From assembly GCA_025558095.1 (NCBI GenBank), contig JAIVFI010000001.1, forward strand, positions 1,488,001-1,552,000: DNA of 64,000 nt. The letters are read 5' to 3'. Below the pieces are notes generated by a model. The model was not told the origin of the DNA, made no database searches, and was given only the letters and a program-made list of their open reading frames with translations. Positions 17,495-64,000 of the stretch are shown here, one piece after another. A program made the translations under genes and the position numbers. The stretch comes from Hyaloraphidium curvatum SAG 235-1. Lineage: Eukaryota; Fungi; Monoblepharomycota. Position 1 is the first letter of the stretch. Each line of letters starts with the position of its first letter.

Positions 17495-19170
17495 ATGCCC
17501 GACCATTCCGCAGACGGCGCCGCCAAACCGGCCACCTTCTTTCGCCCCGATGACCTCGCTGCCGCGTTTCCGCGGCCGCTGCCCCCGGCGGGCCCATGGG
17601 ACCGCGGCAGGCCCTCGAACCCGACCGCGCCGGCGCCGTGCACAGACGATGCGCTGATGGCCGCGCTGGAGCCGTACCCAACCCTGCGCACACTCGCGGC
17701 GTGGCGCTTGGCCCTGTGGTGGATGCTGCCGACACTCCTCGTGCGCTCCACCGTTTTGGGCGCGGTGAGCGCGGCCTTCTGCGCGTGCGCCCTCGTTTTC
17801 GGCGGTGGTGCTTTTGGAGCTCGCCAGTTGGTCGGCGGCTACGTGCTTGTGGCGATCTATTGCGCCGCGCTCCCCGCAGTGTATTTCGCCGGGCAGGTGG
17901 TGAGGCTGGCGCGCGCCCTGCCGGACCTCCTCCCGTCGAAGGCGGCTGCCGCGCGCGCCGGGCTGCGTTGGAACGTGCGACCTGGTCTATTTCGTGGCAT
18001 CGTCACCAAGTACATTCTTTCGCAGCACGCCATGGTGCCTGCATGGGCGCGCTCTGTGAAGGACGGGACGGCGTCCGGGACCGCGCTCAACCACCTGGAG
18101 GGCGACACGGAGTGCACGTGCTCCGCCCCACGGTGCTCCGGCGCGCTTCTGACCGCCGCTGCGCGCGACTTGGTTGCCAATCTGGCTGCTTGGTTGACCC
18201 TGCAGCTGGCGTTGTTCGTCTTTCTCTGTTGGACGCCTTTATTCTCCCTCCCGCAGGTATGGACTCACGCGTGGAGCATCTTCCTTGGGATCTGTTATTG
18301 TATGTAGTCCGCTCGGGATCAGAATGTTTTGCCGGTGACACTGCTGACGCCATCTGTGCCGCGCGGCAGGTCTCGCAGTGTTGCACTTGGCACTCGAACC
18401 TTTTGCCTCCTCGACGTTGGAAAACATGCTCTTCAGGTTGGAAGGCCGCATCCGCCGGCGGCTCGTGCGCCGTGCGCTCGCCGCCTTCCTGGACCGGGCA
18501 CGCCAGGCTGTTTTCTCGGGGCAGCCGTTCGCCACACCGCTGGAGCTCTGGGGATGGGGATCGCAAGAGGAGCCGTACATGCTTCTACACGCCGAGCTGC
18601 GGCCGCGGTGGCAGCAGACCGTGCAGTCGGACAACAATCCTATTGTCTACCCCGTCTTTATCGGCCTCACGATCCTCCTGATGGCTGCCAGCATCGTGGG
18701 TAGCCCTGCCATCCTCGGGCCCCGCCTCATCTCTCCCCCCTCCCCAGATCATCGGCGCCTGCATCCCGGCTTGGATGCTCGCCGTCCTTGCCTATTTCGC
18801 TTACGTGCTCCTCCGCGACCTGTGGCACACCGCCGTCGCAAATTCCGAGATCGCATCCCTCGGCGACCTATACTCCTCCGCGCTCGCCGAAACCAGGGAC
18901 CTCCTCGTCGCCGCCTCCCCCCCTTCCCCGGACGCCGCCGACGCGCCCCGTGCCGCGGCGCTGCGGCGGCATCTAAAATCCCACGCCGCCGCGCTGGAGC
19001 TCTACGCGGGCGAGGCCCGCGACGCGAGGCGCCGGTTCCTCGGCGTCGCCGTGGGGTTCGGCTCCTTCAGGGGCTTGCTGGTGTCGCTTGCCACAGTTGC
19101 CTTCGCAGCCTGGGGTCTGCTGAGGGGATTCGGCGTCGCAGCGACGCTGGAGACGGTGTGCCCGGGCTGA
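17495..19170 (+). CDS. family A copy 1: 7-TM membrane protein, putative gustatory-receptor-like/DUF3537-like (7TMIC), about 517 aa
   Basis: Introns 18300-18369 and 18696-18747 give a continuous frame; 7 hydrophobic segments; ends RRFLGVAVGFGSFRGLLVSLATVAFAAWGLLRGFGVAATLETVCPG. Confidence 0.75.
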
Positions 19171-19404
19171 GCAAGCACCGGCAGATCCGTAGGGCAGGAG
19201 GACTTGGAGGCCAGGCCACCCCATTTCCCGGGTGTCTGTCACGGGTATTCGACAAAGAGGAAATACACGGCCTGGATCCGCCGTCAGCGCCCGCCGCATG
19301 TTCACCTGGTTCGCGGAATCTTGGCTGCATCGCTGCCCTGAGCAAAGCGAGGCATGCGATGGATGATCGGGACGCTGGAATCGCTCCGCGAGACTTCACC
19401 AAGA

Positions 19405-19830
19405 ATGGACACGGCCATCGAGATGCCCGATGCCGCCGGCGGCTCCTCCAAGCCGACCGGCTTCTTCCGCCCCGAGGACCTCGCCGCGGCGTTCCCGCGG
19501 CCGCTGCCGCCGGCGGGGCCATGGGACCGCGGACGGCGGTCGAACCCCGCCCCTGCCGCGCCGTGCACGGAGGACGCGCTGATGACCGCACTGGAGCCGT
19601 ACCCGACCCTGCGGACGCTCGCAAAGTGGCATTTGGCTTTATGGTGGATGCCGCCGACCCTCGTCGTGCGCTACACCGTTGTCGGCGGGGTGGGCGCGGC
19701 CTTCTGCGCGTGCGCCCTCATTTTTGACGGCGGCGCGTTCGGGCCGCGCCAGCTCGTCGTCGGCTACGTGCTAGCTGCGACCTACTTCGCCGGAGTCGCG
19801 GCGACGCTCGAGACCGTGTGCCCCGGTTGA
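19405..19830 (+). pseudogene. family A copy 2: internally deleted in frame (141 aa)
   Basis: N-terminus to TM2 is joined directly to the terminal GVAATLETVCPG* at ~19790. Confidence 0.75.
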
Positions 19831-20036
19831 TCGGCGGCATTGCCAGACCTGGGCCCTCCCCTCGTCGCGTCATTGCGTGCACGATGTGTACCGCAAACTC
19901 TTGTCGAAACAAAGCTCGATGGCAAAACGAGCAACGCGAGAGACCTGTAAAGCGCTCGATGCAGCATGTGGAGTTCGACGTTTCGATGGTCGACGCTGAT
20001 CGGCGCCTCAAAACAAACAGCAGCGAGAACAGCACG

Positions 20037-20912
20037 ATGCCGGCTCCTCGCCCTCCTCCGCACCCCGTGTTTACTTCGAAGCTCCCCGACGACGGCGAAG
20101 TTCGGCGCCTCTCGTTCTCGGAGCTCGCGACGGGCCTCTACGACGTGCTCCTCCCGCTCCTCCCTTCTGAGTCCGCGAGCACGCTGGTCCTCCACAACGT
20201 CGTCAATGTGGCCCTCGTTTGCGTCGGTCTGCGGCAGGCGTGCTTCGTCGAGTTCCGGGAGGCCTTCAAGGACGGCGCGGCCGGGGAGCTCGCGAGGGCG
20301 GCCATCAGTGCGCTTGCATCGCTGGTGTCGAATCGCGCGATCGACGGCAAGCGTGTCCTCATCATGACCGACACGCGGCCTTCGAACGCGTTCGCTCTAT
20401 ACAGAAAGGAACGCGTACAACTCGCAGACGTGCTGGCGGCGCTACCCTCCCTTGGCTACGCCACTGACGGGCCGCGCAAGGACCTGTGGCTTCCCGGAGC
20501 GCGTTCCCTGGGGTACCCGATCTTCACAGAGCACCCGGAGGAAATCAATGCCCGGGACCAATGGCGTGTGCAGTGCGCTGCGGTGTTCAAGGAGCTCGGC
20601 ACGGAGGACCGCCACGTCACGGCAAGCTTCGCGCTCTACCACGCACGCTACGGCAAAGCCGACATCGTCCGGGCCAGGAAGGAGATAGAAGAACACGCGA
20701 ATGTCCTGAACGCTGCCATCGCAGGCCAGGAAGTTGCCGGGTTCCGCATAGATCGCCTGGTTGTCCTCGTGGACAGCTGGGCCGACGTGATGGAGATCGA
20801 TCACCAGGACTTGGAGGATCTGAAAAGCATCAAGGGCGCGAAGTGGGAAGGTGGCGGCTACAAGCAGGTCCCGGGAGGCTTCGCTGAGATCGAATCGGCG
20901 ACGAGCGCATGA
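20037..20912 (+). CDS. family B copy 1: uncharacterised intronless protein
   Basis: MPAPRPPPHPVF..SFSELATGLYDVL..NVALVCVGLRQAC..LGYPIFT..ALYHARYG; paralogous to 21258, 44134 and 46977. Confidence 0.75.
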   Translation: MPAPRPPPHPVFTSKLPDDGEVRRLSFSELATGLYDVLLPLLPSESASTLVLHNVVNVALVCVGLRQACFVEFREAFKDGAAGELARAAISALASLVSNRAIDGKRVLIMTDTRPSNAFALYRKERVQLADVLAALPSLGYATDGPRKDLWLPGARSLGYPIFTEHPEEINARDQWRVQCAAVFKELGTEDRHVTASFALYHARYGKADIVRARKEIEEHANVLNAAIAGQEVAGFRIDRLVVLVDSWADVMEIDHQDLEDLKSIKGAKWEGGGYKQVPGGFAEIESATSA

Positions 20913-21257
20913 CAAGCCAATTGAGCAGCGGGTCGAGGAGGTCTTCGAGTAGGGGAGCAAAAGATCTTTCACTGATGATTCTACTTTCAGCCGACCCACG
21001 TCATGTGTAGGAGACCAGCGATATTGTCCGGCTACGCGGTTTCGTTGGCGACCAGGAGTGAGGCTGAACCGACACGTCGACCCAAACATGGTGGAGACGG
21101 GGAAGAGACGGTCTGGTCAAAGGTCGATTCGGGCGGTGAATTGTGACGGGGTTTCATTTGGAATAATGGCCTGCGCTTGCTTCTCGTTCTTCCGAGGCCC
21201 GGGGAGCGCCACGTCAACGAACAACAAAACCGACCGAGCGAAGCCCTGCGAACCGTC

Positions 21258-22199
21258 ATGCCCCCTCCGCGACCATCTCCGCACCCCGCTTTCGTCTCGG
21301 AGCTCGCAAAAGATGCCCCTGTGCCCAGCTTTTCCTTCTCCGAGCTCGCTACCGGATTCTACGACGTCCTGCAACCCCTCGTCCCGTCGCCGGCCGCCCG
21401 CCTCTTCGTGCTGCACCACGTCGCCAACATGGCTCTCGTCTGCATCGGTCTGCGGCAGGCGTGCTTCGTCTGGTTCGGGGAGGGCTTCCCCGACGACCGG
21501 GCGGCACAGCTTGGGGAGGCTGCGGCGGGGGCTTTCTGCTCGTTGCGTGCGAACGGCGTCCCCGGCACCGGCAACATCGGCATCACCATCAACCGCGACC
21601 AGTCCAACTCGTTCGTGCTTTACCGCCTGGAGCGGGTTCACGTGACCGACGTGCTCGCCGCGGCGCGGGTTCTCGGGGCGGTCACCGATTTGCCCACCAG
21701 GGACCTCTGGCTTCCTGCCGCGCGGGCCCTCGGGTACCCGATCTTCACGGTGCACCCCGAGACGATACCAGCAAAGGACCAGTGGCGCCTTCAGTGCGCA
21801 ATCATCGTCGAGGAGCTGGCGACGGGCGCGCTGAGGAGGCTGGCGCTCTACCACGCCCGGTACGGAGAAAAGGACGTCGAGCGAGCGAAGAACGAGATCG
21901 AGAGACACGCAGATGCCCTGAACAATGCGATCGCGGGGGAAGAGATCGCCGAGTTCCGCATCCGAAAGGCGCTGGTGGTTTCGCAGAACTGGGAAGAGAT
22001 CGCGGCGGAGCAGAAGATCTACGAGGAAGGGGTGAAGGGCATTGTGCGCTCGGGCGGCGGGTGGGGCGAGCTGCTGGACGACATTTCGTTCCGGAGGAAG
22101 GCCGCAGGGGCTCGCAGGGAGGCGCCCGTTCCCCGGGCACGCGTTTCCGGTCTGTCGCGCAGCAGTTCGGCCACGGACTACGAGGACGAAGGCCGTTGA
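21258..22199 (+). CDS. family B copy 2: uncharacterised intronless protein
   Basis: Same motifs as copy 1; tandem duplicate. Confidence 0.75.
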   Translation: MPPPRPSPHPAFVSELAKDAPVPSFSFSELATGFYDVLQPLVPSPAARLFVLHHVANMALVCIGLRQACFVWFGEGFPDDRAAQLGEAAAGAFCSLRANGVPGTGNIGITINRDQSNSFVLYRLERVHVTDVLAAARVLGAVTDLPTRDLWLPAARALGYPIFTVHPETIPAKDQWRLQCAIIVEELATGALRRLALYHARYGEKDVERAKNEIERHADALNNAIAGEEIAEFRIRKALVVSQNWEEIAAEQKIYEEGVKGIVRSGGGWGELLDDISFRRKAAGARREAPVPRARVSGLSRSSSATDYEDEGR

Positions 22200-22373
22200 A
22201 CGTATGCAGCTCAGAACAATGGAATCCTGAATCGCGCCATCCTGGCGCGCGCCGCCCCGAGACTGAGTGATCGGAGCGGCCGAGGGGTCGCGATCGACAT
22301 CCGTTCCGCCGCTGCCACCGCCGCGGGATTCACGGGGCCGATTTCCTAGAATTGCTATTGCTGGCGACTTGAC

Positions 22374-30561: not shown

Positions 30562-32261
30562 TCACCCCGGGCACACGGTCTCGAGCGTCGCCGCAACCCC
30601 GAACCCCCTCAGGAGCCCCCACGCCGCGAACGTCACCGTGGCCAGCGACACCAGCAAGCCCCTGAAGGAACCAAACCCCACCGCGACGCCGAGGAACCGG
30701 CGCCTCGCGTCGCGGGCCTCGCCCGCGTAGAGCTCCAGCGCCGCGGCGTGGGCTGCGAGGTGCCGCAGCAGGATGTCGTCGGGCTGGACCGAGGAGGGGA
30801 GGGTGGCGGAGACGAGGAGGTCGCGGGTCTCGACCAGCGCGGCGGAGTATAGTTCGCCGAGGGAGGCGATCTCGGAGTTGGCAACTGCGGCGTGCCAAAG
30901 GTCACGAAGCAGGAAGTAAACGAAGAGGGCGAGAACGGAGATCATCCATGCCGGGATGCAGGCGCCGATGATCTGGGCAATGACGAAGAAGGGATGAAGG
31001 TCAAATCGGGCCGACGGTCGAATCACCCACGATGCTGGCGGCCATCATGAGTATCATGAGGGTGATGAATACGGGGTAGATAAAGGGGATGTTGTACGAC
31101 TGCACGGATTGCTGCCACCGTGGCCGCAACTCGGCGTGGAGCTGCATGTACGGCTCTTCCGGCGAGCCCCAGAGATCCTTCGGTGCAGCGAAAGCCTGCC
31201 CTGCGAGGACGGCCTGCTTTGCGCGGTCCAAGAAGGCGGCGAGGGAGCGACGGACGAGACGTCGTCGAACGCGGCCTTCCAGCCTGAACAGCATATTCTC
31301 CGGCGTCGGAAAGGCGAATGGCTCGAGCGTGTAGTGGAGCAAAACGATACCTGAGGCGCAGCAGCCCACGCGGTGGAGTTGGGAGTCAACAACGCCAGGT
31401 AGTTCGAAAGCCGGCTTCGGCAGCAAACTCACAGAAGCTGACCGCAAGCAAGATGCTCCACGCGTGGGTCCAGACCGGCGGGAGGGAGACTAGCGGCGTC
31501 CAGCCCAGCAAGACCAACGAGGCCAGCATCAGGATGATGTGTCCCGCCAAATCGGCCAATTGGTAGCGAGTGGCGGTGGCCAGCAGCGCGCCGGAGCAGT
31601 GTGAGGCAGCACACGTGCATTCGGCGTCGCCTTCTATGTGGCCGAGGGCAGTGTCCAACACACTGCCTTCCCATTCCCGCACGCAGCGCGTCCACGCGGG
31701 CAGGAGAGCGTACCCTGCCAGGTTGTCCATGAGGCGGAAGGTCCGCCACGGCCCAGGCTTCACGTTCGCCTTCAGCCAAATGCGCACCGCCGCGGCCGCG
31801 GTCGGGAACTCTTCGGGGAAAAGGTCGCACAAAAGCATCACCTGGCCCGCGAAAACTACGGAGGGCATCGCGGCGCAGTATATCGCCACCAGTACGTAAC
31901 CGCCGACGAGCTGGCGCGCTCCGAACGTGGCGCCGCCGAAGACGAGCGCGCATGCGCAGAACGCCGCGAAGACTGTGTTGGAAAGAGCGTGGCGGATGAC
32001 GAAGGTCGGCGCCGTCCACCACAGTGCCAACTGCCACTTTGCGAGCGTCCGCAGAGTCGGGTACGGCTCCAGCGCGGCCATCAGCGCGTCCTCCGTGCAC
32101 GGCGCGGCAGGGGCGGGGTTCGACGGCCGTCCGCGGTCCCAGGGGCCCGCCGGCGGCAGCGGCCGCGGGAACGCCGCGGCGAGGTCCTCGGGGGAAAAGA
32201 AGCCGGTCCGCTTGGTGGCAGCGTCGGCGGCATGGCCCGCAGGCATCGCGACCGAGTCCAT
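30562..32261 (-). CDS. family A copy 3: 7-TM GR-like/7TMIC candidate, 3 exons
   Basis: Paralogue of 17495-19170 with the same two intron positions and the same C-terminus. Confidence 0.75.
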
Positions 32262-32762: not shown

Positions 32763-34433
32763 TCAGCCAGGACAGAAAGTCTCGAGCGTCGCCGCGACGC
32801 CAAACCCCCTCAGCAGCCCCCATGCTGCGAACGTGACCGTGGCTAGCGACACCAGCAGCCCCCTGAAGGAGCCGAACCCCACGGCGACGCCGAGGAACTT
32901 GCGCCTCGCGCCGCGGGCCTCGCCCGCGTAGAGCTCCAGCGCCGCGGCGTGGGCTGCGAGGTGCCGCAGCAGGATGTCGTCGGGCTGGACCGAGGAGGGG
33001 AGGGTGGCGGAGACGAGGAGGTCGCGGGTCTCGACCAGCGCGGCGGAGTATAGTTCGCCGAGGGAGGCGATCTCGGAGTTGGCAACTGCGGCGTGCCAAA
33101 GGTCACGAAGCAGGAAGTAAACGAAGAGGGCGAGAACGGAGATCATCCATGCCGCGATGCAGGCGCCGATGATCTGGGAAATGACGAAGAAGCGATGACG
33201 GTCAAATGGGGCCGGCGGTCGAATCACCCACGATGCTGGCGGCCATCAGGAGTATCATGAGGGTGATGAAGATGGGATACACAAAAGGGACGTTGCTCGA
33301 CAATACGGCTTGCTGCCACCGTGGCCGCAGCTCGGCATGCAGCTGCATGTACGGCTCATCTTGCAATCCCCAAAGCTCCCGCGGGGTGGCGAACGGCTGC
33401 CCTGAGAGAACAGCCTGCCTGGCGCGGTCCAGGAAGGCGGCCAGGGCGCCGCGCACGAGCCTCCTGCGGATACGGCCTTCCAGCCTGAGCAGCATATTCT
33501 CCGGCGTCAAGTTGGCAAAGGGTGTGAGTGCCAAGTGCAACGCTGCGAGGCCTGCCGGGGGGAATGAGCAGTGCCCGCCAGCGAAACAGCCGGATCCCGA
33601 GCCGCGTACCCACAGAAGCAGATCCCAAGGAAGATGCTCCACGCGTGAGTCCAGACCTGCGGGAGGGAGAACAAAGGCGTGAAGCCCAAAGAGACAAACA
33701 TGGCCAGCTGCAGTATCAACCAAGCAGCCAGATTGGCAACCAAGTGCCGCGCAGCGGCTGAAAGAAGCGCGCCAGAGCACCGAGGGGCGGCGCACGTGCA
33801 CTTCGTGTCGCCCTCCAGGTGGTTGAGCGCGGTCCCGGACGCCGTCCCGTCCTTGGCCGAGCGAGCCCACGCCGGCACCATGGCATACCCTGATAGAACG
33901 TACTCGACAACGAGGCTCCGAGACGGCCGAGGTCGCACGCTCCAACGGAGCACGGCGCGCGCGGCAGCCGCCTTGGACGGGAAGAGGTGCGGCAAGCCGC
34001 GAGCCAACGTCACAACCTGCCCGGCGAACCACACGGCGGGGAACGCGGCGCAGAAGATCGCCACCAGCACGTAACCTCCGACGAGCTGGCGAGCCCCAAA
34101 AGCGCCGCCGTTGAAGACGAGGACGCACGCGCAGAAGGCCGCGCACACCGCGCCCAAAACGGTGTAGCGAACGGGGAGCGTCGGCGGCATCCACCACAAA
34201 GCCAATTGCCACTTTGCAAGCGTCCGCAGGGTCGGGTACGACTCCAGTGCGTCCAGTAGCGCGTCCTCCGTGCACGGCGCCGGCGCGGTCGGGTTCGCGG
34301 GACGGCCGCGATCCCACGGACCGGCCTTGGGCAGCAGCCGCGGGAACGCCGCAGCAAGGTCCTCGGGAAGGAAGAAGCCGGCCTGTTTGGAGGAACCGTC
34401 GCTGGCATCGGGAACCTCGATGACCGTGTCCAT
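32763..34433 (-). CDS. family A copy 4: 7-TM GR-like/7TMIC candidate, 3 exons
   Basis: Paralogue with the same intron positions; ends ATLETFCPG. Confidence 0.75.
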
Positions 34434-36236: not shown

Positions 36237-36529
36237 CGGCGGGGAGAAGGGAGAAGGGGGGGGGGGGGGTGAGAGAACGCGAAACACAATGCTATCCGTC
36301 GTCCCCGGGTCCTGCAAGGGCGCCTCTACTGGAGGTTCTTCGCATGCCCAGATCCAGATCGGGATCACGGCTCAGTGGCGCTGCTAGCGAGAGGGTATGA
36401 GCATACGGTTCGATCTGCATGGCTGGCTCCCGCCAGTGGATCGACTTCCCTCCGCGTTCTTCCCCACGTCTCGCGGCCGAGCCTCCGCGCCGGGCCCGCC
36501 ACTCGAGCCTCCGCCGCACCCGCTGCGCG

Positions 36530-44025: not shown

Positions 44026-44133
44026 GTAATCGAGTAGAGATTCGTGTGTTTGCGAGGCCTTTGGAATGCAGCGACGTTGTTCACCGGTGATGAGTTCGGC
44101 GCCTCCAAAACCCAACGAGAGAGAAAAAGCACG

Positions 44134-45159: not shown

Positions 45160-45636
45160 CTAGAATGCCTTCAGCTCGCTCTTTGGCGCAAAGTTGCACT
45201 TGACGCCCGCCAGCAACGCGGCGCCCCTCACGCGCACCCATCTGTCCTGTGCCTGGTCCGCGGACACCCCGGCGTAGAACACCCGCTCGTCCCGGTACCC
45301 GCCCAGGATCCCAATGCCGTCCACGACGACCTTCACGTCCGGGGGCGCGACGACGCGCACAGAGCCGCAGAGAGCGTACGCTTCGACGACGGTCTCGCCG
45401 GGAGGGAGCAGTGCGCCGCGGAGGTCGACGGTGGTGCCGCCAGCCAGGGCGGCGGCGACGATGTGCCGCGGCGGGGCCTTGCCGGCGTACCGCAGGTGCG
45501 TCTTTATGGGAAAAGTGGAGAAGCCGAAGGGCGCGCCGGTCTCGGGCGCGTCGGTGCGGGGCGGCGGGGGCGGGGCGGCGGTGTAGGCCGGGGCAGCCTC
45601 GAAGGCGGGGGCGGCGTCGGTGTGCTTGGAGTCCAT
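45160..45636 (-). CDS. small protein resembling the bacterial LiaF-C/DUF2154-type beta domain, copy 1
   Basis: ALAGGTTVDLRGALLPPGETVVEAYALCGSVRVVAPPDVKVVVDGIGILGG..VRVRGAALLAGV; intronless. Confidence 0.65.
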   Translation of the reverse strand: MDSKHTDAAPAFEAAPAYTAAPPPPPRTDAPETGAPFGFSTFPIKTHLRYAGKAPPRHIVAAALAGGTTVDLRGALLPPGETVVEAYALCGSVRVVAPPDVKVVVDGIGILGGYRDERVFYAGVSADQAQDRWVRVRGAALLAGVKCNFAPKSELKAF

Positions 45637-46053
45637 CGCGGTTTCGGTTGGTTTGAGAGAAGAGAGGCGACAGGCGAGAGGTATCAGAGAAGGCTGCTTC
45701 GCTTGATGATGCTCCGACAGTCCATCGGGCCCGTTTATCTATGTTTGTGGGGTTCTCGCGGCGGAACGTTCGCGGGCGGTGCGTTGCACTGCCTCAGCCA
45801 CAAGGTCGCGAGAACCTCGCCGTCGCAAAAACTCCCACGTCTGCGGCCGTCCAGACATCGCAGGAGGGGCGACGATAAACCTGGAGAACCGCAGCAGCAG
45901 CAGGGGTAATCTTTCAACCGAAGTGGAAGCACGGAGTCCTTCCCAGTCTACGGCTCAAATGGTCATCGCAAGGCAAGGGTATCTGTTTGACCTTTCGCAG
46001 TCTCAGTTGCTCACTACTCGTTGATGAGGTTCCGCTTACTACTCCTTGTGTGC

Positions 46054-46977
46054 TCAGACGTCGCCTTCACCATCTTCGAAGACTTCCGTCTTCCCGCTGC
46101 TGGACTTGCTGAACCTCGCCGCGGCCTCCGCCCCAACCGAGCTGAAGACTTCGTAGGGCTGCTCGCTCTCCTTCGCCAGGTGATCCCACTTGACGCCCTC
46201 GATGCCCTTCAGGTGATCCAACCAATCCCGGTTCGCCATCGCCTCGGCCCAGTTGGTCTCCACCCGATCGATCCGGAACCCGGCGATCTCCTGTCCGGCA
46301 ATGGCCGCGTTCAGCAAATCCGTGTGCCGTTCGACCTATTCCTTGGCCCGCTCGAGGTCCGCCTTGCCGTACCGCGCGTGGTAGAGGGCCGACCTCGTGG
46401 TCCCCTCGTCGCCGGCGTTCCCGAGATCCTTAAACACCGCCGCGCACTGCACCCGCCACTGGTCCCCGGCTTTGAGCTCCTCAGGATGCACCGTGAAGAT
46501 CGGGTAGCCCAGCACGCGCGCCGCCGGGAGCCACAGATCCCTGCCCGGCCCGTCCCTCGCGTAGCCCATCGCCCGCATGCCCGCGAGCACGTCCGCGGTC
46601 GTCACGCGCTCCTTCCGGTACAGCACGAAATCCTGCCTCTGGCCGATCATGAGGGAGACCCGCCGGCCGTCGATCGCGCCGTTCTTCTCGAGCCAGCCAA
46701 GGGCGCTGACGGCCGCGCCGCCCATGCGGTTCGCCAGCTCGTCGTGGAAGCACTCCCAGAAGGCGATGTGGCACGCCTGCCTGAGGCCGAGACAGACGAG
46801 CGCCATGTTGGTGACCTTGGGGAGGACCAGGGTGCGCGAGGCCCCAGAGGGAATGAGCGGGTAAAGCACGTCGTAGAGGCCCGTGGCGAGCTCGGAAAAC
46901 GAGAGGCGTGGGACAGCAACGTCTCTGCCAAGTTTCGATGTGAACACCGGGTGCGGAGGAGGGCGAGGAGGGGCCAT
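46054..46977 (-). pseudogene. family B copy 4 with a premature stop
   Basis: In-frame TAG at 46336-46338 (AKE*VERHTDLLNAAIAG vs ARKEIEEHANVLNAAIAG in copy 1). Confidence 0.7.
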
Positions 46978-47494
46978 CGTGCTTTTCTCGGGCTTGTTTA
47001 CAGCGAGGCGTTCGCTCCCCGCGACGCTTCGAATCACGACCAAAACAAAGCACCAAACACAGTTCTCGAACCGGGCATACATTCGTATTCTTTCATTTCT
47101 CATTGCTGGACGTGATTTCAATTGTCTCCCAACTCCCCCCATTGAGCGGCTTTGTTCTGTGCCGTTCTTCACGAACGGCCTGTCCGCAACCAGTCTGAAA
47201 TGTATCCTCCGTCGAAGACTTTATCTGCTATGGCCGCGGCGGCCCAATCTTTGTGGTAGGCCACATCTAGGAGCGTCCGGACGGCCGCGAGACGTGGGAG
47301 TTTTCGCGACGGCGAGGTTCTCGCGATATGTGGCTGAGGCAGTGCAGCGCACCGCCCGCGAACCTTCCGCCGCGAGAACCGCCGCGTACATAGATAAACG
47401 GCCCGGGTGACCGGTCAGAGCATCATCAAGCGAAGCAGACTTCTCTGCCAACTCTCAACTCTCCCCTCTCTTCTCTCAATCAACCGAATCCGCG

Positions 47495-47971
47495 ATGGAC
47501 TCCAAGCACACCGACGCCGCCCCCGCCTTCGAGGCTGCCCCGGCCTACACCGCCGCCCCGCCCCCGCCGCCCCGCACCGACGCGCCCGAGACCGGCGCGC
47601 CCTTCGGTTTCTCCACTTTCCCCATAAAGACGCACCTGCGGTACGCCGGCAAGGCCCCGCCCCGGCATATCGTCGCCGCCGCCCTGGCCGGCGGCACCAC
47701 CGTCGACCTCCGCGGCGCACTGCTGCCCCCCGGCGAGACCGTCGTCGAGGCGTACGCGCTGTGCGGCTCGGTGCGGGTTGTCGCCCCCCCGGACGTGAAG
47801 GTCGTCGTCGACGGCATTGGGATCCTGGGCGGGTACCGCGACGAGCGCGTGTTCTACGCCGGCGTGCCCGCGGACCAGGCGCAGGACAGATGGGTGCGCG
47901 TGAGGGGCGCCGCGCTACTGGCGGGCGTCAAGTGCAACTTTGCGCCAAAGAGCGAGCTGAAGGTCTTTTGA
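47495..47971 (+). CDS. LiaF-C/DUF2154-like small protein, copy 2
   Basis: Near-identical inverted copy of 45160-45636. Confidence 0.65.
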   Translation: MDSKHTDAAPAFEAAPAYTAAPPPPPRTDAPETGAPFGFSTFPIKTHLRYAGKAPPRHIVAAALAGGTTVDLRGALLPPGETVVEAYALCGSVRVVAPPDVKVVVDGIGILGGYRDERVFYAGVPADQAQDRWVRVRGAALLAGVKCNFAPKSELKVF

Positions 47972-49845: not shown

Positions 49846-51006
49846 ATGGCTGCTCAACCCGGAAACGCCCCGGCATCGCCGCCACCATCGCCCTCTTTCC
49901 CCTGGACCTTGGAGGACCCGGCCGGCTCGCGATGGAAGGGCCACCGCGACGCCGTGCTCACTTTAGACGCGTTCTCCGAGCCCAACGGCCCGCGGTGGCT
50001 CGCCTCCGGCTCCGAGGACGGCACTGTCCGCGTGTGGGACGCATCTACTGGCCGCACAACGAGATGCTACGCGTGCTTCGGCGGGGAGCCCGTGTCGGCG
50101 GTGGCGTTCGGCGACGGCTCGCGGCTCTTCGCCGCCGCGGGCCGGGACGCTTTCGAGCTAGATCTGCGGGCGCCGGGGGTGGTGCTCAGGGAGCCCAAAG
50201 CCAGATTGGAACGGCTGGCGTCGGACGAGATCAACCAGCTGGCCGTGCAGAGGCACCCGCGGACGGGGGCGCCGCAGTACCTCGCCGCCGCGGACGACAG
50301 CGGCAAAGTCACCGTGCTGGACGCCAGCGTGTCGCCGCCGAAGCAGTACAAGACGCTGAGCAGGAGGGGGAGGGACCAGGCCATGTGCACCTGCGCCGCG
50401 TTCAGGCCGAGGGGGCAGTGGGACCTCGCGTGCGGCTATCTGGTCCAGGGGGAGCTCGGGCTGTGGGACTTCGGCCGCGCGCGGTGCCGGACTGTGGACG
50501 CTGGCGCCGCCGTGCGGTCGGGCAACCCGCTGGAGGACCAGGGCGACGGGACGGGGCTGCCGAACCAGATGTTCAACCCACCGTACCTGCACGGCCTCGC
50601 GTTCGATGCGTCGGGGAGGTGCCTTGCCGCCGCGCTGGGGAGCGGCGACGCGGTGGTATACGAGTGGGCACGGGCGGAGGAGGGGCCGCTGGCAGTGCTC
50701 AGGGGCGGGCACGCGAGCTCGTTGGCGGGGGTGTGCTTCCTGGACCGCGAGGGTGGGACGGAGGGCGGATTGTTCCTGGCGACGGCGGGGAATGACCGCG
50801 TGGTGAACCTCTGGGAGTGCTCGACGACCGTGGAAGGAGGTGGACTGGCTTCGCGGGTGGTGCGAAAGATCCACGGGCTGCCGGGCAAGCCCAACTGGAT
50901 CGCAAGCGTGTGGGATGGGGATGGCGGGTTGAGGCTGTTTGTCGCCTGCACGACGCCCGAGATCGCCGTGTATCGGTTGGCTCCAAGTGTGGTGGGCACG
51001 GGGTAG
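49846..51006 (+). CDS. WD40-repeat protein (WDR53-like)
   Basis: KGHRDAV, LASGSEDGTVRVWD, DEINQL, LAAADDSG, QMFNPPYLH, ATAGND. Confidence 0.8.
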   Translation: MAAQPGNAPASPPPSPSFPWTLEDPAGSRWKGHRDAVLTLDAFSEPNGPRWLASGSEDGTVRVWDASTGRTTRCYACFGGEPVSAVAFGDGSRLFAAAGRDAFELDLRAPGVVLREPKARLERLASDEINQLAVQRHPRTGAPQYLAAADDSGKVTVLDASVSPPKQYKTLSRRGRDQAMCTCAAFRPRGQWDLACGYLVQGELGLWDFGRARCRTVDAGAAVRSGNPLEDQGDGTGLPNQMFNPPYLHGLAFDASGRCLAAALGSGDAVVYEWARAEEGPLAVLRGGHASSLAGVCFLDREGGTEGGLFLATAGNDRVVNLWECSTTVEGGGLASRVVRKIHGLPGKPNWIASVWDGDGGLRLFVACTTPEIAVYRLAPSVVGTG

Positions 51007-51403: not shown

Positions 51404-53604
51404 ATGTCCGGGGGTGCGGAGGAGTGCTTTCTGCGGGGCCGCAAGTACGAGACGGGGGACGGCGTGGCGCAGAACTACGCTACGGCCGTCGAATGGTATC
51501 GCAAGGCCTCGGATAAGGGGCACGCAGTCGGGCAGAACAACCTAGGATGGTGCTACGAGAACGGGAAAGGTGTCACCCAAAGTTTCTCTGAGGCCGCGAA
51601 ATGGTACCGCAAGTCGGCCGATCAGGGTAACGCACTCAGGCAGAACAACCTCGGCGCGTGCTACCAGGACGGTCAGGGCGTCGCAAAGGATCTTGCGCAG
51701 GCCGTGAAGTGGTATCGCATGTCGGCCAATCAGGGCAACATGTTGGGGCAGTTCAACCTAGGAAGGTGCTACGAGAACGGGTTGGGTGGCCTCACGAAGG
51801 ACCTTTCCTTGGCTCTGGACCTGTACCAGAAAGCCGCCGCCCAGGGTCAGAAGGAGGCAGAATTGGGCATCTCGAGGGTTCAGGCTGCAGTCGCTGCAGA
51901 GGAGTGCTTCCAGCGCGGCCGGAAGCACGAAATGGGGGAAGGCGCGGCACAGGACTACGCCGTAGCTGCAAAGTGGTATCGCCAGGCCGCGGATAAGGGG
52001 CACGCAGTCGGGCAGAACAACCTTGGATGGTACTACGAGAACGGGAAAGGTGTCACCCAAAGTTTCTCTGAGGCCGCGAAATGGTACCGCAAGTCGGCCG
52101 ATCAGGGTAACGCACTCGGGCAGAACAACCTCGGCGCGTGCTACCAGGACGGTCAGGGCGTCGCAAAGGATCTTGTGCAGGCCGTGAAGTGGTATCGCAT
52201 GTCGGCCAATCAGGGCAACATGTTGGGGCAGTTCAACCTAGGAAGGTGCTACGAGAACGGGTTGGGTGGCCTCACGAAGGACCTTTCCTTGGCTCTGGAC
52301 CTGTACCAGAAAGCCGCCGCCCAGGGTCAGAAGGAGGCAAAGCTAGCTGTTGAGAGGGTGCAGCCAAAGGGAGTGGAAGCCGAGGCACGGCGCCGCCGGG
52401 AGGAGGACATTGCACACGAACGTGAGAAGCTGGAGCTCCACCGCCAGCGAACTGCGGAAGAGGAGAGAGCCCTTCGGGTGCGCTTGGAGCTCGAGCACGA
52501 AGCCAAGGCCAAAGAGCTGTCGCTCCTTGCGGAGCGGCTCAAGCTGGAGAAACAGCTGGCGGACCTGAAGACCGCGCAGCCGACTGCCCAAGCGGCGTCA
52601 CCGGGCAACCCCGGCGGGCTATCTTCCCACGGTGCGTACGAGATCCTCCCCAACAATCTAGAGAAGGGCAAATACCTCGGCTCGGGCGCCTTTCGCGAGG
52701 TGTTCGACGGGCTCTACCAGAAGCACACCCGGGTTGCCATGAAACTTGTCAAGATTGCCGGATCACCGCGCCAGCTGGAGCGGAAGCGGGCCGATTTCGA
52801 GCAGGAGATGGCGGTTTGGGGAACTTTGCCCTACCACGACAACGGTGAGCTTCCTCCCTGCTGACCTAATCATATCGGACGTCGTGTTGACGGCGGAGGC
52901 AGTCCAACCGCTCATCGGCTGGTGCAAGGAGCCCTTCTGCATGGTCACGCGCTTCATGGCCAATGGCACCGCCGCGGACTACCTCGCCGCCAAGCGCTGG
53001 GACCCCGCCGTGGTCGTCGATGTCCTGTTCCAGATCGCCAAGGGGATGAACCACCTCCACTCAAGGCCGATGCCGATCCTGCACTCGGACCTTAAGGGTG
53101 CGAACGTGCTGGTGGACGAGAACGGGGTCGCCAAGGTCGCCGATTTCGGGCTGAGCAAGATCCGGTCGGGGTCGACGAGGCAGACGATGTTTGTTGGGGG
53201 AACGCCGTACTACATGGCGCCCGAAGGTAGGCACCCCGCGGCGGCCCGTGCCAGATCCTCTTGCTCATAACGTTGCTTGACCTGCAGTGTGGGACGGACG
53301 GCGCGGGCGGCCCTCGGACGTCTACGCCTTCGGCATGATGATGTGGGAGTTCCTCTCCGAGGGCGACACACCACTGGAACAGGAGATGATGGACGAAGAC
53401 ATCGGGTCGGCGCAGAGGCTCGGGGAGCGGATCAAGGCGGATCCCGACTTCCGACCGCAGAGGCCGGATAGGTGCCCTGAGGCGCTGTGGGCCCTGATGC
53501 GGAGGTGCTGGGACTTCGACGCCGCGAAGAGGCCCACGTTCGGGCAGGTCGCGGACGAGCTGAAGGCGATCATCGACCGGAAGGACAGTGCTTTGGCAGT
53601 ATGA
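51404..53604 (+). CDS. Sel1-repeat + coiled-coil + TKL-type protein kinase, 3 exons
   Basis: 8 Sel1 repeats; GSGAF, VAMK, HSDLKGAN, DFG, YMAPE, SDVYAFG, RPTF; introns ~52845-52901 and ~53227-53287. Confidence 0.9.
51410..52340 (+). repeat. 480-bp tandem duplication of a four-Sel1 block
   Basis: 51510-51860 matches 51990-52340 at offset 480 with only a few substitutions. Confidence 0.9.
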
Positions 53605-53824: not shown

Positions 53825-55273
53825 ATGGACCCCCTCGCGGTCGCCCAGGGGCTCGTGGAGGTCGGCATCATCATCCACCGGATCGCGATGACCGTGAAGG
53901 AGAACCGCTCCGCGTACGCCGCGCTGGCCCACCGCTGCAAGACGTGCACCGAGACCGTGCGGGGGCTGGTGCTCGAGAACGAGAAGCGGCGCGAGGTCGA
54001 CATAAACGACTCGGTGGACCTTTCGGCACCCGCCGCCGCAAGCCCGCTGCGGCAGCTGCGGGAGCTGCTCGAGGAGATAAAGGACGCCGTAGAAAAGGCC
54101 GCCAAGCGCAACTTCCTCAAGCAGCTCGTGTTCTTTCTCCGCTGGGAGCAGGAGATCAAGGACCACCACGAGAGGCTCCAGCAGCTCCAGCAGGATGTGC
54201 AGCTGGCTCTGTTCCGCGACCTCGCCCGGGATAACCGCAAGGCGTGGGAGCGGCTGGAGCGGGAGCAGAGGAAAGTGGAGCGGAGGATGGCGGAAAACCA
54301 CAAAGAGCTCCTCGAGGCCCTGGACAAGGACCGGAAGCGGACGTTCGAGTCGGCGATGGACCTGCCGATGGCCAAGGTGCTCGAGGTCAAGGACCTCGAC
54401 GACCTCGTTAAGACGCTGGTGGACGTGGAAAAGACGGCCGAGGACGCCGAGTACCGGACCGCAATCAAGATGTCGCGCAGGGTCGTCAATCAGGTCCGCA
54501 TGGTCAAGAAGACCGCGATCACGGTCGACCTGGCCTTCCTCGTCGACTGCACGGGCTCGATGGTGGAGTTCCTGGACTACACCAAGAAGGTCATCGAGAA
54601 CATCCTCGACGCCCTCACCGAACACTTCCCCCAGCTCACCCTCAAAGTGGCCTTTGTCGGCTACCGCGACTTCGACAAGAACGGCAAGTCCGAGTACGAA
54701 GTCGCCGACTTTGCCCCGCCCGCCGACACCCGCCGGCGGATCGCCTCGGTCAAGTGCCGCGGCGGGTGCGGCAGCGACTGGCCCGAGGACCTCCTCGGCG
54801 GGCTGGACCGCGCCTCGAAGCTCTCGTGGAGCTCCCCGGCGAGGGTGCTGGTCCACATCGCCGACGCCCCCCCGCACGGCAAGATGTTCTTTGACCGCGG
54901 CCGGCACAACGATAGGTACTACGACGACGACGAGCCGGATCCAAACGGCATGCGGCCCGACTCGTACCGCGGCGTGCTCGAGACGCTCAAGCAGCGCGGG
55001 GTCGAGTACTACTTCTTCCCGCTCAACGACACGACCAAGGAGACGGAGACCCTGTTCAAGGGCGCTTCGAAGGCCATGGGGCTCCCTTTCGAGGTCGTTA
55101 AACTGGACGCGGAGGGGAAGGAGCATCCGGACTACAAGGCGCTGCTGGCGGGGATCGTACAGCGGACCGCGGGGAGCATTGTGCATTCCTTTGCACACAT
55201 GGTGTTGGGCGACGGCGCGGGGAAGAGGTCGCCCATGTCGCCCGTGTCGCCGGCGTCGCCAATCATTCGGTAG
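53825..55273 (+). CDS. MLKL-N-terminal-like four-helix bundle + von Willebrand factor A domain protein
   Basis: MDPL..IHRIAMTVKENRSAYAALAHRC..LRQLRELLEEIKDAVEKAAKRNFLKQLV..EIKDHHERL; MIDAS VDLAFLVDCTGSM, FVGYRDF, GGCGSDWPED, LVHIADAPPHG; intronless. Confidence 0.8.
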   Translation: MDPLAVAQGLVEVGIIIHRIAMTVKENRSAYAALAHRCKTCTETVRGLVLENEKRREVDINDSVDLSAPAAASPLRQLRELLEEIKDAVEKAAKRNFLKQLVFFLRWEQEIKDHHERLQQLQQDVQLALFRDLARDNRKAWERLEREQRKVERRMAENHKELLEALDKDRKRTFESAMDLPMAKVLEVKDLDDLVKTLVDVEKTAEDAEYRTAIKMSRRVVNQVRMVKKTAITVDLAFLVDCTGSMVEFLDYTKKVIENILDALTEHFPQLTLKVAFVGYRDFDKNGKSEYEVADFAPPADTRRRIASVKCRGGCGSDWPEDLLGGLDRASKLSWSSPARVLVHIADAPPHGKMFFDRGRHNDRYYDDDEPDPNGMRPDSYRGVLETLKQRGVEYYFFPLNDTTKETETLFKGASKAMGLPFEVVKLDAEGKEHPDYKALLAGIVQRTAGSIVHSFAHMVLGDGAGKRSPMSPVSPASPIIR

Positions 55274-57804: not shown

Positions 57805-57854
57805 GATGGGCGATGGGCCGAATGCAGCGGGACATGAGAGAGGTCGCGGTTGAG

Positions 57855-58411: not shown

Positions 58412-58539
58412 ACAGCCTCGTTGCGCCCACCTCGCACGGCGGCATCGCTGCTGCTGATTCGAGGCCTCCGATCGCGGCCCGGAAGCGGCGCCCGTGCTTC
58501 AATCAAGTTCAATTGCCGACCACGTTAGTGACATCGCAT

Positions 58540-60147
58540 TCACCTGATCGGACAGAACGTCTCGACTGTCGCAAACACCCCCGCCGACCGCAATATGCTC
58601 CAGAGCCCCACTCCCAGCGTGAACAGGGTCGCCAGCAGCGTCCTCAGCACCGAATACCCGACCGCGAACCCCAAGAACCGCGCCTTGTACCTCCCGACCT
58701 CGGCCTGCACCGCCAGCACCTTCTCGTGGTACCCCAGGTCCTCTCGTATCCCGGGGGCCGCGCGCGGGGAGCGGGCGAGCAGCAGCCCGAGCTCGTCCCG
58801 CGCCTGGGCGTAGAGCAGCCCGACGGCGTCCACCTGCGCGTTGCTCACGGCGAAGCTGGCCAGCTCGAAGGCCTGGTACGCCAGGCTGATGCCCAGCGCG
58901 CCGAGGGTCCACATGGTGATGCAGGAGCCGGTCGAGGCGGTGATGACGGAGCACAGGACGACGTTGCCCAGGGTTGACCACACGAAGAAGGCGAGGACGC
59001 CCTTGCCGTCGTCAAGGCGGTTCTGCCAGACCCGCATCAGGATCTGGTGCAGCCCTACGTGCTGCTCGTCCGCGTCCGGGCGAAGGGGATGGCCGCTTTC
59101 CAGAGAGCGCCTGGCGGTCTCGAGAAAGGACGAGAGCGAGAGGGACACGGCCCTGTGGTGGCCCCGCAGGAGGAGCTCGAGCAGCCCGGGGTTCCAAAGC
59201 TGCAGCTGCATCATTGATCCAAAAAAGACGTAGAGCAGGCCGCAGACGATCACGACGCAGGCGGGCAGCGCTGTCCACCACGTGGTCCAGGTGCGGCCGG
59301 CGAACGTCACCATCGGCGTCCAGAGCGAACCCAAGATCGTGACCAGCTGGGGCAGCCCGACGACAACCGTTCGTAGCAGTGCGTGCCACGCGGAGCGCGT
59401 GACGAGGCCGCCGGCGCAGCGGGGAAGGGGGCAAGGGCAGAGTTCGGGGCGGGATGGGTCGTGGTCGAGGAGCCTGACCATCCCCTGGGGCGGTATGCAC
59501 CCGCTCTCGGCATTTTGCGAGAGCGTTTGGAGGTTTGCACACGAAAGCTGTGGCTCCCGAGCGGTATTGCTTGCTGGCTTTCCCCGCTCATCCGGGCATT
59601 CCTGCACGCCGCCTCCCAGGCGGCCGTTCCCCACCAGCTCGAGCCACCTGACAATGACGGCCCACGGCACACTGTTGAGCCCATCGTCCGGTCGCGCCCG
59701 GCCCATGGTGTACCAATACCTCGATATGGCCTTGGTGGCGACAAAGAAGAGCGCCGAGCATGTCCAGTTCCACAGAACGGCGGCGGTGCCCGCCACAAGC
59801 TGGCTGTGCCCAAACTGCCCGTCGTTGAACAGGAACACCGCGGTGCAGAGTGGAACCAGGGCGAGGACCGCGGCGGCGCTCAGGGCGTCGTTATGTACGG
59901 TGTGTGGTCCCAGCGAGAGGGACACCCGTGCTACCGTCCTCGTCGCGGGGAACGGTATGAGCGCGTCCAGCAGCCTCTTTGGCGTCACGGCATATGCTTT
60001 GCGAAAGTCTGCGGCCGTATCCGCGGGCCCCGGGGCGCCGGAGAGCGAGGGGGGGATGCGCGGCCAGGAGGGGAAGAGGAACGTTAATTCCTGCGGCGTG
60101 AAGCCGACGGGGCGCGGAGGCGCGTCTGGCACAGAGTCTGAGGCCAT
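58540..60147 (-). CDS. family A (subfamily 2) copy 5: intronless 7-TM GR-like/7TMIC candidate, 535 aa
   Basis: 7 hydrophobic segments, CPCPLPRCAGG loop; ends KARFLGFAVGYSVLRTLLATLFTLGVGLWSILRSAGVFATVETFCPIR. Confidence 0.75.
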   Translation of the reverse strand: MASDSVPDAPPRPVGFTPQELTFLFPSWPRIPPSLSGAPGPADTAADFRKAYAVTPKRLLDALIPFPATRTVARVSLSLGPHTVHNDALSAAAVLALVPLCTAVFLFNDGQFGHSQLVAGTAAVLWNWTCSALFFVATKAISRYWYTMGRARPDDGLNSVPWAVIVRWLELVGNGRLGGGVQECPDERGKPASNTAREPQLSCANLQTLSQNAESGCIPPQGMVRLLDHDPSRPELCPCPLPRCAGGLVTRSAWHALLRTVVVGLPQLVTILGSLWTPMVTFAGRTWTTWWTALPACVVIVCGLLYVFFGSMMQLQLWNPGLLELLLRGHHRAVSLSLSSFLETARRSLESGHPLRPDADEQHVGLHQILMRVWQNRLDDGKGVLAFFVWSTLGNVVLCSVITASTGSCITMWTLGALGISLAYQAFELASFAVSNAQVDAVGLLYAQARDELGLLLARSPRAAPGIREDLGYHEKVLAVQAEVGRYKARFLGFAVGYSVLRTLLATLFTLGVGLWSILRSAGVFATVETFCPIR

Positions 60148-60588: not shown

Positions 60589-62191
60589 ATGGCGTCGGAA
60601 TCCTTATCGGACGCGCCTCCGTGCTCCGCGGGCTTCACTCTCCAGGAATGGGCCTTCCTCTTCCCATCCTGGCCCGTCATTCCCCCCTCCCTCTCCGGCG
60701 TCCCGGGGCCCTCGGATCCGGCGGCAGACTACCGGAAGTCGTACCCCGTGACACCACAGACGCTGCTGGACGCGCTGAAACCGTTCCCCGTGACGAGGGC
60801 GGTCGCTCGGCTCTCGCTCTCGCTGGGCCACCACGTTACAAAGAGCGACCTCGTGAACATCGCCCTGCTTCTCTCCATGGTGCCAATCTGCACCGCGGCG
60901 TTCCTTTTTGACGAAGGACAGTTCGGCCGCACCCAGCTTGTGGCGGGCACCGCTGCGCTGTTTTGGAACGCGAGCTTCGTTGTCCTCTTCCACGTCGCCG
61001 TAAAGGCCATCTCGCGGTACTTATTCACCATGGGGCGTGTGCAAACGGACGAGGCACTCAATGGGCTGCCTTGGGCCGTCGTGGTCAGGTGGCTCGAACT
61101 GGCCGGGAGCGCCCCGGAAAGTGCCCCGGATCGGTGCAGCGTGGAATCAACAGGGGCTGGCAGCACCGCCCGTGCGACGCACCAGTCATCCGCGTACCTC
61201 CGCACGCTCTCACATCGCGCTGAAGGCCGCGGCAAACCCCCCCGGCGGGCGGGACAGGCTCCTCGCGCACGATCCCGCCTGGCCCGACCTCTGCCCCTGC
61301 CCGCTCCCCCGCTGCGCCGGCGGCTTCGTCGCCGGCGCGTCGCGGCACGCGCTGCTCCGCATGATCGTCGTCGCGCTGGCGCACTTTGTCGTGTACCTCG
61401 GCTGGCTCTGGACGACAGCGGTCACGTTCGCGCCGCGGAGCTGGAGCACCTGGTGGACGGCGATAGCGGCCTGCGCCGCGATCGCGTGCAGCATCCTGTA
61501 CGTCCTCCTCGGATCGCTGTTCCAGGTGCAATTATGGAACCCTGGCCTGCTCGAGCTCCTGCTGCGGGGCCACCACCGGGCCGTCTCGTTGTCTCTCTCG
61601 TCCTTCCTGGAGGCCGCCCGGTATTCCCTCGAAACGGGGCGGTCGCTCCCGGACGACGCGGACGGGCTGCATGTCGCGCTGCACCAGATCCTGACGCAGG
61701 TGTGGCAGAAGCGCCTCGACGACGGCAAGGGCGTCCTGGCCCTCTTCGTATGGTCGACCCTCGGCAACGTCGTCGTCTGCTCCACTATTACCGCCTCGAC
61801 CGGCTCCTGCATCACCATGTGGACCCTCGGCGTGGTCGGGATCAGCCTGACCTACATCGCGTTCGAACTCTCGAACTTCGCGGTGAGCAACGCGCAGGTG
61901 GACGCCGTCGGGCTGCTGTACGCCCAGGCGCGGGACGAGCTCGGCCTGCTCCTCGCCCGCTCGCCCCGCACGGCTCCGGGGATCCGGGAGGACCTGGGGT
62001 ACCACGAGAAGGTGCTGGCTGCGCAGGCGGAAGTGGGGAGATACAAGGCACGGTTCTGCGGGTTCGCAGTGGGATACTCGGTGCTGAGGACGTTGCTGGC
62101 GACGCTGTTCACGCTGGCGGTGGGCCTGTGGAGCGTACTGCGGTCGGCGGGGGTGTTTGCAACCGTCGAGACGTTCTGTCCGATCAGGTGA
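60589..62191 (+). pseudogene. family A copy 6, +1 frameshift in a C7 run (61237-61243); pseudogene or sequencing error
   Basis: Codon alignment to copy 5 (ATA CCG CCC CAG GGG vs AAA CCC CCC C GGC GGG) needs one C removed; otherwise intact. Confidence 0.65.
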
Positions 62192-62337
62192 ATCATTGTC
62201 GCTCCAAGGTTGGAAATGAATGTCCGCTTGTTGTCTCTAGGGTGCCTGTTGCCGTTGCTGGACGAGACACATCGGCCAATTCCGCCGCCCTTTCGCCGCC
62301 CCGTACGAAACCTCCTCCTCCCGTCCGAGAGACCGCC

Positions 62338-62833: not shown

Positions 62834-62946
62834 CAACCACGGAAAAGGTCGTCGCTGGTTCCAAAAGCTCGATTCGCCGAAGACAGCGGGCTTCCTGTAC
62901 GACCATTCCCGCCCACCCTTGTCGGTTCCGTCGCCGCCCGCCCCTG

Positions 62947-63633
62947 TCAGTCCAAATCGCCTCCAAACATGGCCGCCAGCACCGCGCCGTAGTCGGCAAA
63001 CCCGTTGGGGATAACGTACACGGGCAGCGGGGCCAGCTGCGCGTCCATCACATTGGCCGCGGCCCACCACACCTCCAGGTACCGCGTCACCCCGTCCAGC
63101 GTCGTCTCGGGCATGTCGTCCAGGAACCCCAGGATCGACACGGTGATGGGCTGCTCCTGGTTGGTGCCCTCGCCGTTTGTCACCTGCGCGACCGCGACGG
63201 CGCGCTGGGACGGCGCCCAGGCGGCGTAGTTGGCCGCGCCCGGGGTCTGGAACGAGAGCAGCCACGGCTCGAGGTCGGAGCACCACTTTGCGTCCACGCA
63301 GTCCCCGTCGAGGCAGCACCCCGCGCAGCTTTCGGGGGCGCACTGCGGGCACCCCTCGGCACTGCACTCGCCCATGGTCTCGCCAGGGGGGACTATGCAG
63401 CAGCCCGCCTTGCACAGCGGCAGCCCCGCTCCGCAAGGTTCGCCGTCGGGCGGCGGCGGCGGCGAGGGCGGCGCGCAGAAGAAGGGGTCGGCGCACACGC
63501 CCTCGGCGATGCAGCCCGTCGTGCAGGGTGCGCAGCTGCCGGTGGCGCAGACGGTGACGGTGCACTGCGCGTGCGCCGCGGGGAGCAGGCAAAACACGGA
63601 GAGCAGCGCGGCGAGGAGGGCAGCGGTCCGCAT
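62947..63633 (-). CDS. secreted cysteine-rich protein
   Basis: Signal peptide MRTAALLAALLSVFCLLPAAHA; about 20 Cys in the N-terminal half; Pro tract. Confidence 0.7.
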   Translation of the reverse strand: MRTAALLAALLSVFCLLPAAHAQCTVTVCATGSCAPCTTGCIAEGVCADPFFCAPPSPPPPPDGEPCGAGLPLCKAGCCIVPPGETMGECSAEGCPQCAPESCAGCCLDGDCVDAKWCSDLEPWLLSFQTPGAANYAAWAPSQRAVAVAQVTNGEGTNQEQPITVSILGFLDDMPETTLDGVTRYLEVWWAAANVMDAQLAPLPVYVIPNGFADYGAVLAAMFGGDLD

Positions 63634-63898
63634 CGCGTCGGAAGCAGGCGATGTAGGTAGTGGCCGCAGCACCCGCGATCGCTCCCCGTCCCCCTTTCCC
63701 CGGCATCGCAACAAGAGACGAGATCAAAATCACTTGATTGAATCTGATTCCCCCTTCGATCTTCCGAGTTGACTAGAGAGCTGCCTCCGGCGCGCAAGGA
63801 CCAGCGCCAAGCCCGCAGGAGAGCGAGATCATCAACAACCTCCTCAACAACCAACTTGCGGGCCCTCACACTTCGATTCCGCCTTTGAAACCGTTTCG

Positions 63899-64000
63899 AT
63901 GGCGTCAGAATCCTTATTGGACGCACCCCCGCGCGGCGCCGGCTTCACGCCGCAGGAATGGGCGCCGGCTTCACGCCGCAGGAATGGGCCTTCCTGTTCC
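63899..64000 (+). pseudogene. family A copy 7 (5' end only), disrupted by a 26-bp tandem duplication
   Basis: MASESLLDAPPRGAGFTPQEW matches copy 6; ggcgccggcttcacgccgcaggaatg at 63935-63960 and 63961-63986. Confidence 0.65.

Follow-up and report, generated by a model that had tools for sequence, protein, structure and literature searches.

The 64,000-nucleotide window of DNA from the non-swimming, aquatic fungus Hyaloraphidium curvatum analysed here (65% GC, eukaryotic DNA) contains seven members of a large paralogous family that very probably adopts the fold of the seven-transmembrane ion channels (7TMICs), as known from insect odorant and gustatory receptors (ORs and GRs). Hyaloraphidium, an early branch of the fungi close to the Monoblepharidomycetes, has neither flagellum nor rhizoid, and its lifestyle is poorly understood (PMC6899921); the assembly comprises 31.9 Mb in 55 contigs. 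The copies were located with six-frame scans, a search for repeats, and a family profile built from 159 paralogues, which are also the sample for the conservation counts given below. This profile matches copies 1 to 6 piecewise inside the window (E = 1e-15 to 1e-132) and copy 7 in sequence just beyond the window end (Table 1). A preliminary description had listed seven paralogues by their start positions, and all seven are ATGs of profile-confirmed family members. The family is real, but only copies 1, 3, 4 and 5 are intact (three of the seven are damaged), and a count of seven understates the family about 60-fold.

The copies fall into two subfamilies, as had been proposed. Copies 1 to 4 carry a CTC-x4-C motif and two introns in common phases (predicted GT-AG introns with identical phases in copies 1, 3 and 4), and copies 5 to 7 are of an intronless CPC-x4-C type or derived from it. 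Exons were joined in silico for reading-frame checks and for scoring against the family's own profile, and database and profile comparisons of copies 1 to 4 were run exon by exon; exon 1 of copy 4 aligns with the genome-wide family at 99.4% probability. Copy 2 cannot form a seven-transmembrane fold because of its internal deletion, and copy 7 has an in-frame stop, a deletion of about 310 nt and two single-base deletions. Copy 6 is 65-79% identical to copy 5, and both halves flanking its C7 tract still have ratios of nonsynonymous to synonymous substitution (dN/dS) of 0.24-0.38, so its frame break reflects either recent pseudogenisation or a homopolymer assembly error. In one public read run, presumed to be RNA, contigs of uneven depth lie over copies 5 and 6 and over most of their spacer, with holes between some genes; no splice joint is seen, and no contig from this run visibly crosses the C7 tract. 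The long variable segment at residues 175-222 of copy 5 was considered as an unspliced intron, but this reading found no support: intronless paralogues show continuous variation in the length of the segment, and one public contig runs through it with no joint.

Table 1. Family members in the window and mapped features of copy 5. TM, transmembrane segment; aa, amino acids.
Feature	Position	Strand	Description and basis
Copy 1	17495..19170	+	Intact, 517 aa, subfamily A; predicted GT-AG introns 18300-18369, 18696-18747
Copy 2	19405..19830	+	141-aa mini-copy; an internal deletion joins the sequence up to TM2 in frame to the final 11 residues
Copy 3	30562..32261	-	Intact, 519 aa; introns 31432-31351, 31030-30973
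Copy 4	32763..34433	-	Intact, 516 aa; introns 33613-33552, 33231-33174
Copy 5	58540..60147	-	Intact, intronless single open reading frame, 535 aa; structure-modelled copy
Copy 6	60589..62191	+	Head-to-head with copy 5; frame broken at C7 tract 61237-61243
Copy 7	63899..64000, runs past window	+	Decayed pseudogene; JGI annotation DFJ74DRAFT_701074
Copy 5 approximate TMs	Residues 88-108, 116-140, 256-276, 292-312, 386-407, 412-432, 500-520	-	Hydropathy and conservation
Copy 5 S7 hairpin (RFLGFAV) and pore helix S7b	58588..58680	-	Model and structural alignment end points
Copy 5 H229-x7-C237-x-C239-x4-C244 motif, cytosolic loop 1	59416..59463	-	Conservation

Topology, predicted fold and family assignment

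The family-averaged hydropathy profile has exactly seven peaks, in agreement with the seven hydrophobic segments first noted. Across the 159 paralogues, loop lengths and the positive-inside charge bias of lysine and arginine place the N-terminus inside and the C-terminus outside (N-in/C-out), with extracellular loops of median 7, 15 and 4 residues and intracellular loops of 90, 77 and 68, the first of these (IL1) lying between TM2 and TM3. In the model of copy 5, TM4-TM6 extend as long helices into the cytosol (residues 290-351, 362-407 and 412-459), a layout repeated in a second model, and TM7 is split into a helix (465-482), two short strands near 489-494 and a further helix (498-521). At the N-terminus, where a 7TMIC would have a re-entrant helix (TM0), the model shows short helices (18-24, 46-51 and 56-62), and the stretch leading into TM1 is amphipathic. 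In GRs, likewise, the long cytosolic helices of TM4-TM6 are followed by S7a, a hairpin and S7b (PMC12635824).

For both models, which were built from different queries and alignments, all eight OR/GR representatives top the structure-search list in near full-length alignments and match better than any other solved fold. The insect structures (MhOR5, 7LIC; BmGr9, 8VC1; DmGr43a, 8JM9; Orco, 8Z9A) share predicted fold and helix order with the H. curvatum family over about 330 residues, together with the N-in/C-out topology, the long cytosolic TM4-6 anchor, S7a, the beta-hairpin, S7b, a pore threonine, and a large divergent repertoire with a conserved TM7; identity, however, is only 6-11% and the root-mean-square deviation (rmsd) 5-6.5 Å. 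We regard a 7TMIC fold and homology as very probable. The 7TMIC-like structure anticipated in the preliminary description is thus supported by two independent models, and none of the contrary outcomes named there (an unrelated fold, an N-out topology, or a TM count other than about seven) occurred.

Searches of Pfam, NCBIfam and PDB by sequence and profile gave no meaningful match for the family, and many accepted 7TMIC members likewise have no direct profile match. A KCNQ1 match (E = 0.2) was dismissed as low-complexity chance. Membership of the insect GR family is ruled out, since the 7tm_7 model (PF08395) matches 0 of 66 members and the TYhhhhhQF motif is not kept (only 2 of 159 sequences contain a TY-x5-Q[FL] string at any position). 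The DUF3537 model (PF12056) also matches none of the 66 members, and the long loop is IL1 rather than IL3, which excludes that family too. Plant DUF3537 proteins are class-A 7TMICs with a similarly unrecognisable TM7 motif and score 0.90-0.92 as feature look-alikes, but number 4-12 genes per plant (Benton et al., 2020). A G-protein-coupled receptor (GPCR) is ruled out by the N-in topology and by the lack of any GPCR among the top 50 structure matches.

Himmel et al. (2023; 10.1101/2023.08.30.555482) define 7TMIC classes A and B, a long IL1 being the hallmark of class B. The H. curvatum proteins have this hallmark, although their loop is far shorter than that of the class-B PHTFs, which in the animals described are highly conserved proteins of one or two copies with a loop of >300 residues, PHTF1 being localised to the endoplasmic reticulum (ER) (PMC9998090); the Pfam searches gave no match to any PHTF family. 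The label 'gustatory-receptor-like', which implies class A, is therefore not established, and we file the proteins as a probable 7TMIC family outside the GR, DUF3537 and GPCR families, without assignment to class A or B. In a feature-similarity search with copy 5 and P0004, TMEM39B (PF10271) was both times the best named look-alike (0.93 and 0.94), ahead of DUF3537 and 7tm_7 clusters; unnamed ciliate clusters scored 0.95. TMEM39 is unmentioned in the 7TMIC screens drawn on, and no structural link between TMEM39 and PHTF was found in the literature searched, which was mostly outside subscription papers; TMEM39 could be a 7TMIC-like protein that has escaped recognition, or its match could be due to chance.

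TM7 is two to three times better conserved than TM1-6, and the CxC-x4-C motif, the A/S-N pair and the RFLGF-x-V hairpin recur as originally described. Three of four structural alignment end points, from which the pore register is taken in place of a residue-by-residue printed alignment, put residue 518 (V, I or L in 94% of paralogues) on the gate residues MhOR5 V468 and BmGr9 F444, the remaining one being off by one. With 518 as the gate, T510 (kept in 97%) corresponds to BmGr9 T436, the T of TYhhhhhQF, T503 to T429, S/T/G517 to Q443, and G/A514 to I440 (PMC11100771). On this register, therefore, the cation-stabilising hydroxyl rings seem to be kept and the gate chemistry to be different. The canonical motif, which had been called absent, is degenerate rather than wholly absent: the Y, Q and F of the insect receptors are missing and the T position alone is kept.

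Two further features are specific to this family. In cytosolic loop 1, 154 of the 159 paralogues retain H229, C237, C239 and C244 together, which suggests a zinc site. C409 and C532, which co-occur in 150 of 159, are both extracellular and lie in or beside short model strands (409-411 and 525-527), suggesting an outer disulfide. Compared with insect ORs and GRs, the family adds the long loop 1 with its His/Cys3 motif, a C-tail cysteine probably bonded to extracellular loop 3, and a conserved, structured N-terminal region of about 90 residues; there is no evidence so far of an Orco-like co-receptor. GRL1 of the chytrids Spizellomyces punctatus and S. palustris (PMC7746228), a fungal 7TMIC candidate, is similar by eye in its G-F-x-V hairpin and in a TM7 ending W-x-x-x-R, but by eye lacks CxC-x4-C, has a short loop 1, and is a single gene per genome against hundreds in H. 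curvatum.

Family size and evolution

A single query recovered about 80 loci on most contigs, mostly intronless open reading frames (ORFs) of 470-540 residues at about 30% identity. Against 1.84 billion proteins, a 66-member profile matched 478 clusters at 50% identity, 312 of them at E<=1e-30; among the clusters ranked 1-150, all 19 looked up are from H. curvatum. Word-based protein search was nearly blind to the family (2 matches, twice), and only the region search found more. At the DNA level, a pattern for CPC-x4-C-x-G hits 249 genome sites (19 for its control), and one for TM7 hits 231 (5 for its control). Of the known members, these patterns recover a fraction of about 0.5-0.65 and 0.42-0.53, respectively; precision rests on reversed-pattern controls and on co-occurrence of the motifs, which lie on the same strand, 770-980 nt apart, at 40 sites (contigs 1-14). 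Capture-recapture puts the family at about 400 copies in one estimate (bootstrap 333-499) and at about 485 in the other, with a union floor near 325; pseudogenes are counted in these figures, and divergent subfamilies like that of copies 1-4 may escape them. At these numbers the 32-Mb genome carries one copy per 66-80 kb.

A metagenome search for related loci with one family protein returned no match. The sole relative found outside H. curvatum occupies positions 1-1200 of a 2.9-kb ENA metagenome contig, where it adjoins a weak SNF2-like gene; its cluster also holds JGI and Logan members. It is probably a decayed copy from another organism, given its 50% identity, its lower GC content (54%; GC at third codon positions 0.60, against 0.85 in H. 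curvatum) and a stop codon in TM7.

All exon-wise comparisons give dN/dS of 0.10-0.43, and at least 66 long intact ORFs keep the invariant residues at about 30% mutual identity. In copies 3 and 4 the last intron and exon are nearly identical (30562-31030 and 32763-33231; 97% amino-acid identity, dS 0.18 against 0.69 elsewhere), the result of recent gene conversion of the anchor and pore exon, which encodes TM6-TM7. Intact, truncated and decayed copies stand side by side in the window. Hundreds of copies, pseudogenes, gene conversion and purifying selection together support the lineage-specific birth and death suggested at the outset.

Several other repeated or unusual genes share the window. 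A second, unnamed paralogue family has four copies at 70-86% DNA identity (20004-20760, 21249-21963, 44125-44846 and 46260-47010), with no Pfam or NCBIfam match for the ORFs tested. An inverted pair (45168-45744 and 47388-47963) is 95% identical, and its ORF weakly matches a bacterial LiaF C-terminal model (E = 2e-4, below cut-off). Arrays of a common 108-nt repeat lie on opposite strands at 51404-52864 and 14421-15309, the former encoding a protein of Sel1 repeats (Pfam E = 1e-75) in which 480 nt are internally duplicated. ORFs with ankyrin-plus-kinase, WD40 and vWA domains near the receptor genes (36419-37606, 49846-51006 and 53825-55273) are possible signalling or defence genes, and 62947-63723 (minus strand) encodes a small protein, rich in cysteine, that begins like a signal peptide and matches nothing in Pfam.

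Proposed function and alternative readings

We suggest, with a probability of roughly 0.5, that this lineage-specific birth-and-death family of about 400-485 7TMIC-fold proteins works like insect ORs and GRs, as tetrameric, ligand-gated cation channels whose pockets vary and whose pore is conserved. The analysis shows the size of the family, its seven TMs, the charge-based N-in/C-out topology, the predicted single-chain fold, the pattern of conservation and purifying selection, and we infer tetramers, conduction, ligands and location. A tetrameric ion channel is likely, and the odds that it senses outside chemicals by ligand gating are about even. The four subunits would assemble at the conserved cytosolic ends of TM4-TM6 and at S7a, and S7b would line a central cation pore with hydroxyl rings at T503, T507 and T510 beneath the aliphatic outer gate at V/I/L518. 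The divergent TM1-TM6 bundle would form a ligand pocket differing between paralogues, so that the repertoire could read many dissolved small molecules and convert them to ion fluxes. The loop-1 site, probably binding zinc, and the C409-C532 disulfide would be structural or regulatory additions. Since the cell cannot swim, the output would probably be metabolic or developmental, such as nutrient uptake, sporulation, dormancy, or a response to algae or bacteria.

The same channels might instead have diversified as a non-self or danger-sensing repertoire for parasite, predator or microbial molecules, triggering defence or cell death. Immune receptor families, as is generally known, typically also show gene conversion, birth and death, and very large numbers of copies, chemotaxis is of little use to a non-motile cell, and expanded Sel1-repeat, ankyrin-kinase and WD40 genes occur in the same window. 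We nevertheless consider this unlikely: pairwise comparisons reveal no positive selection (all dN/dS below 0.45), the family has no fused repeat sensor domain, and the literature drawn on holds no known 7TMIC with such a role.

A somewhat more doubtful alternative is that these are class-B endomembrane proteins, PHTF-like or TMEM39-like, residing in the ER or vacuole and serving there as channels or adaptors, constitutive or under metal control, in place of a receptor role at the cell surface. The long IL1, the ER residence of PHTF1 and the TMEM39B look-alike scores are consistent with this, as is the replacement of the second hydrophobic gate by G/A, given that I440A renders BmGr9 leaky (PMC11100771). 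Yet a housekeeping role is hard to square with hundreds of divergent paralogues when PHTFs are few, conserved and longer-looped; searching by shape retrieves animal clusters of the Grl/7tm_7 type and no PHTF; and feature matches, with their low recognition scores, are weak evidence.

Convergence, in which a lineage-specific multipass protein shares only a common helix arrangement with ORs and GRs, would fit the lack of sequence signal, the weak Foldseek E-values and the high rmsd, but is improbable when all eight representatives lead, near full length, in two separately built models and when topology, split TM7 with hairpin, and pore threonine agree independently. Neutral or selfish amplification of a dispensable gene, as the dispersed, mostly intronless and partly damaged copies might suggest, is already largely refuted by purifying selection, by the invariant residues of the intact ORFs, and by the absence of transposon hallmarks seen around the copies.

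The role of 7TMICs outside insects is an open question according to the authors who defined the superfamily. Outside animals, the 7TMICs that have been described occur singly or in families of no more than about 12; two Spizellomyces species have a single GRL each, and Thecamonas and Vitrella have six apiece (Benton et al., 2020). A family of 400-485 copies exceeds even the numbers of GRs quoted for Drosophila (68) and for Helicoverpa (197). The text of Himmel et al. (2023) does not mention Hyaloraphidium, and no paper tying it to 7TMICs was found in the literature searched; the fold is already known, but the scale of the family and its His/Cys loop appear undescribed there. Hundreds of natural variants in a culturable organism make ligand gating, heteromer use and ancestral function directly testable, and it is a puzzle why a cell without flagellum or rhizoids should have so many receptors. 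We propose tentatively, at somewhat less than even odds, that a non-motile fungus independently evolved an insect-sized or larger repertoire (at least 400) of ligand-gated 7TMICs that carry an outer disulfide and a zinc-binding loop of a new kind. If true, no larger repertoire of this sort that we could find exists outside animals, and it would be evidence that the 7TMIC fold's use in chemical sensing is ancestral or was recruited repeatedly, and is not an insect innovation.

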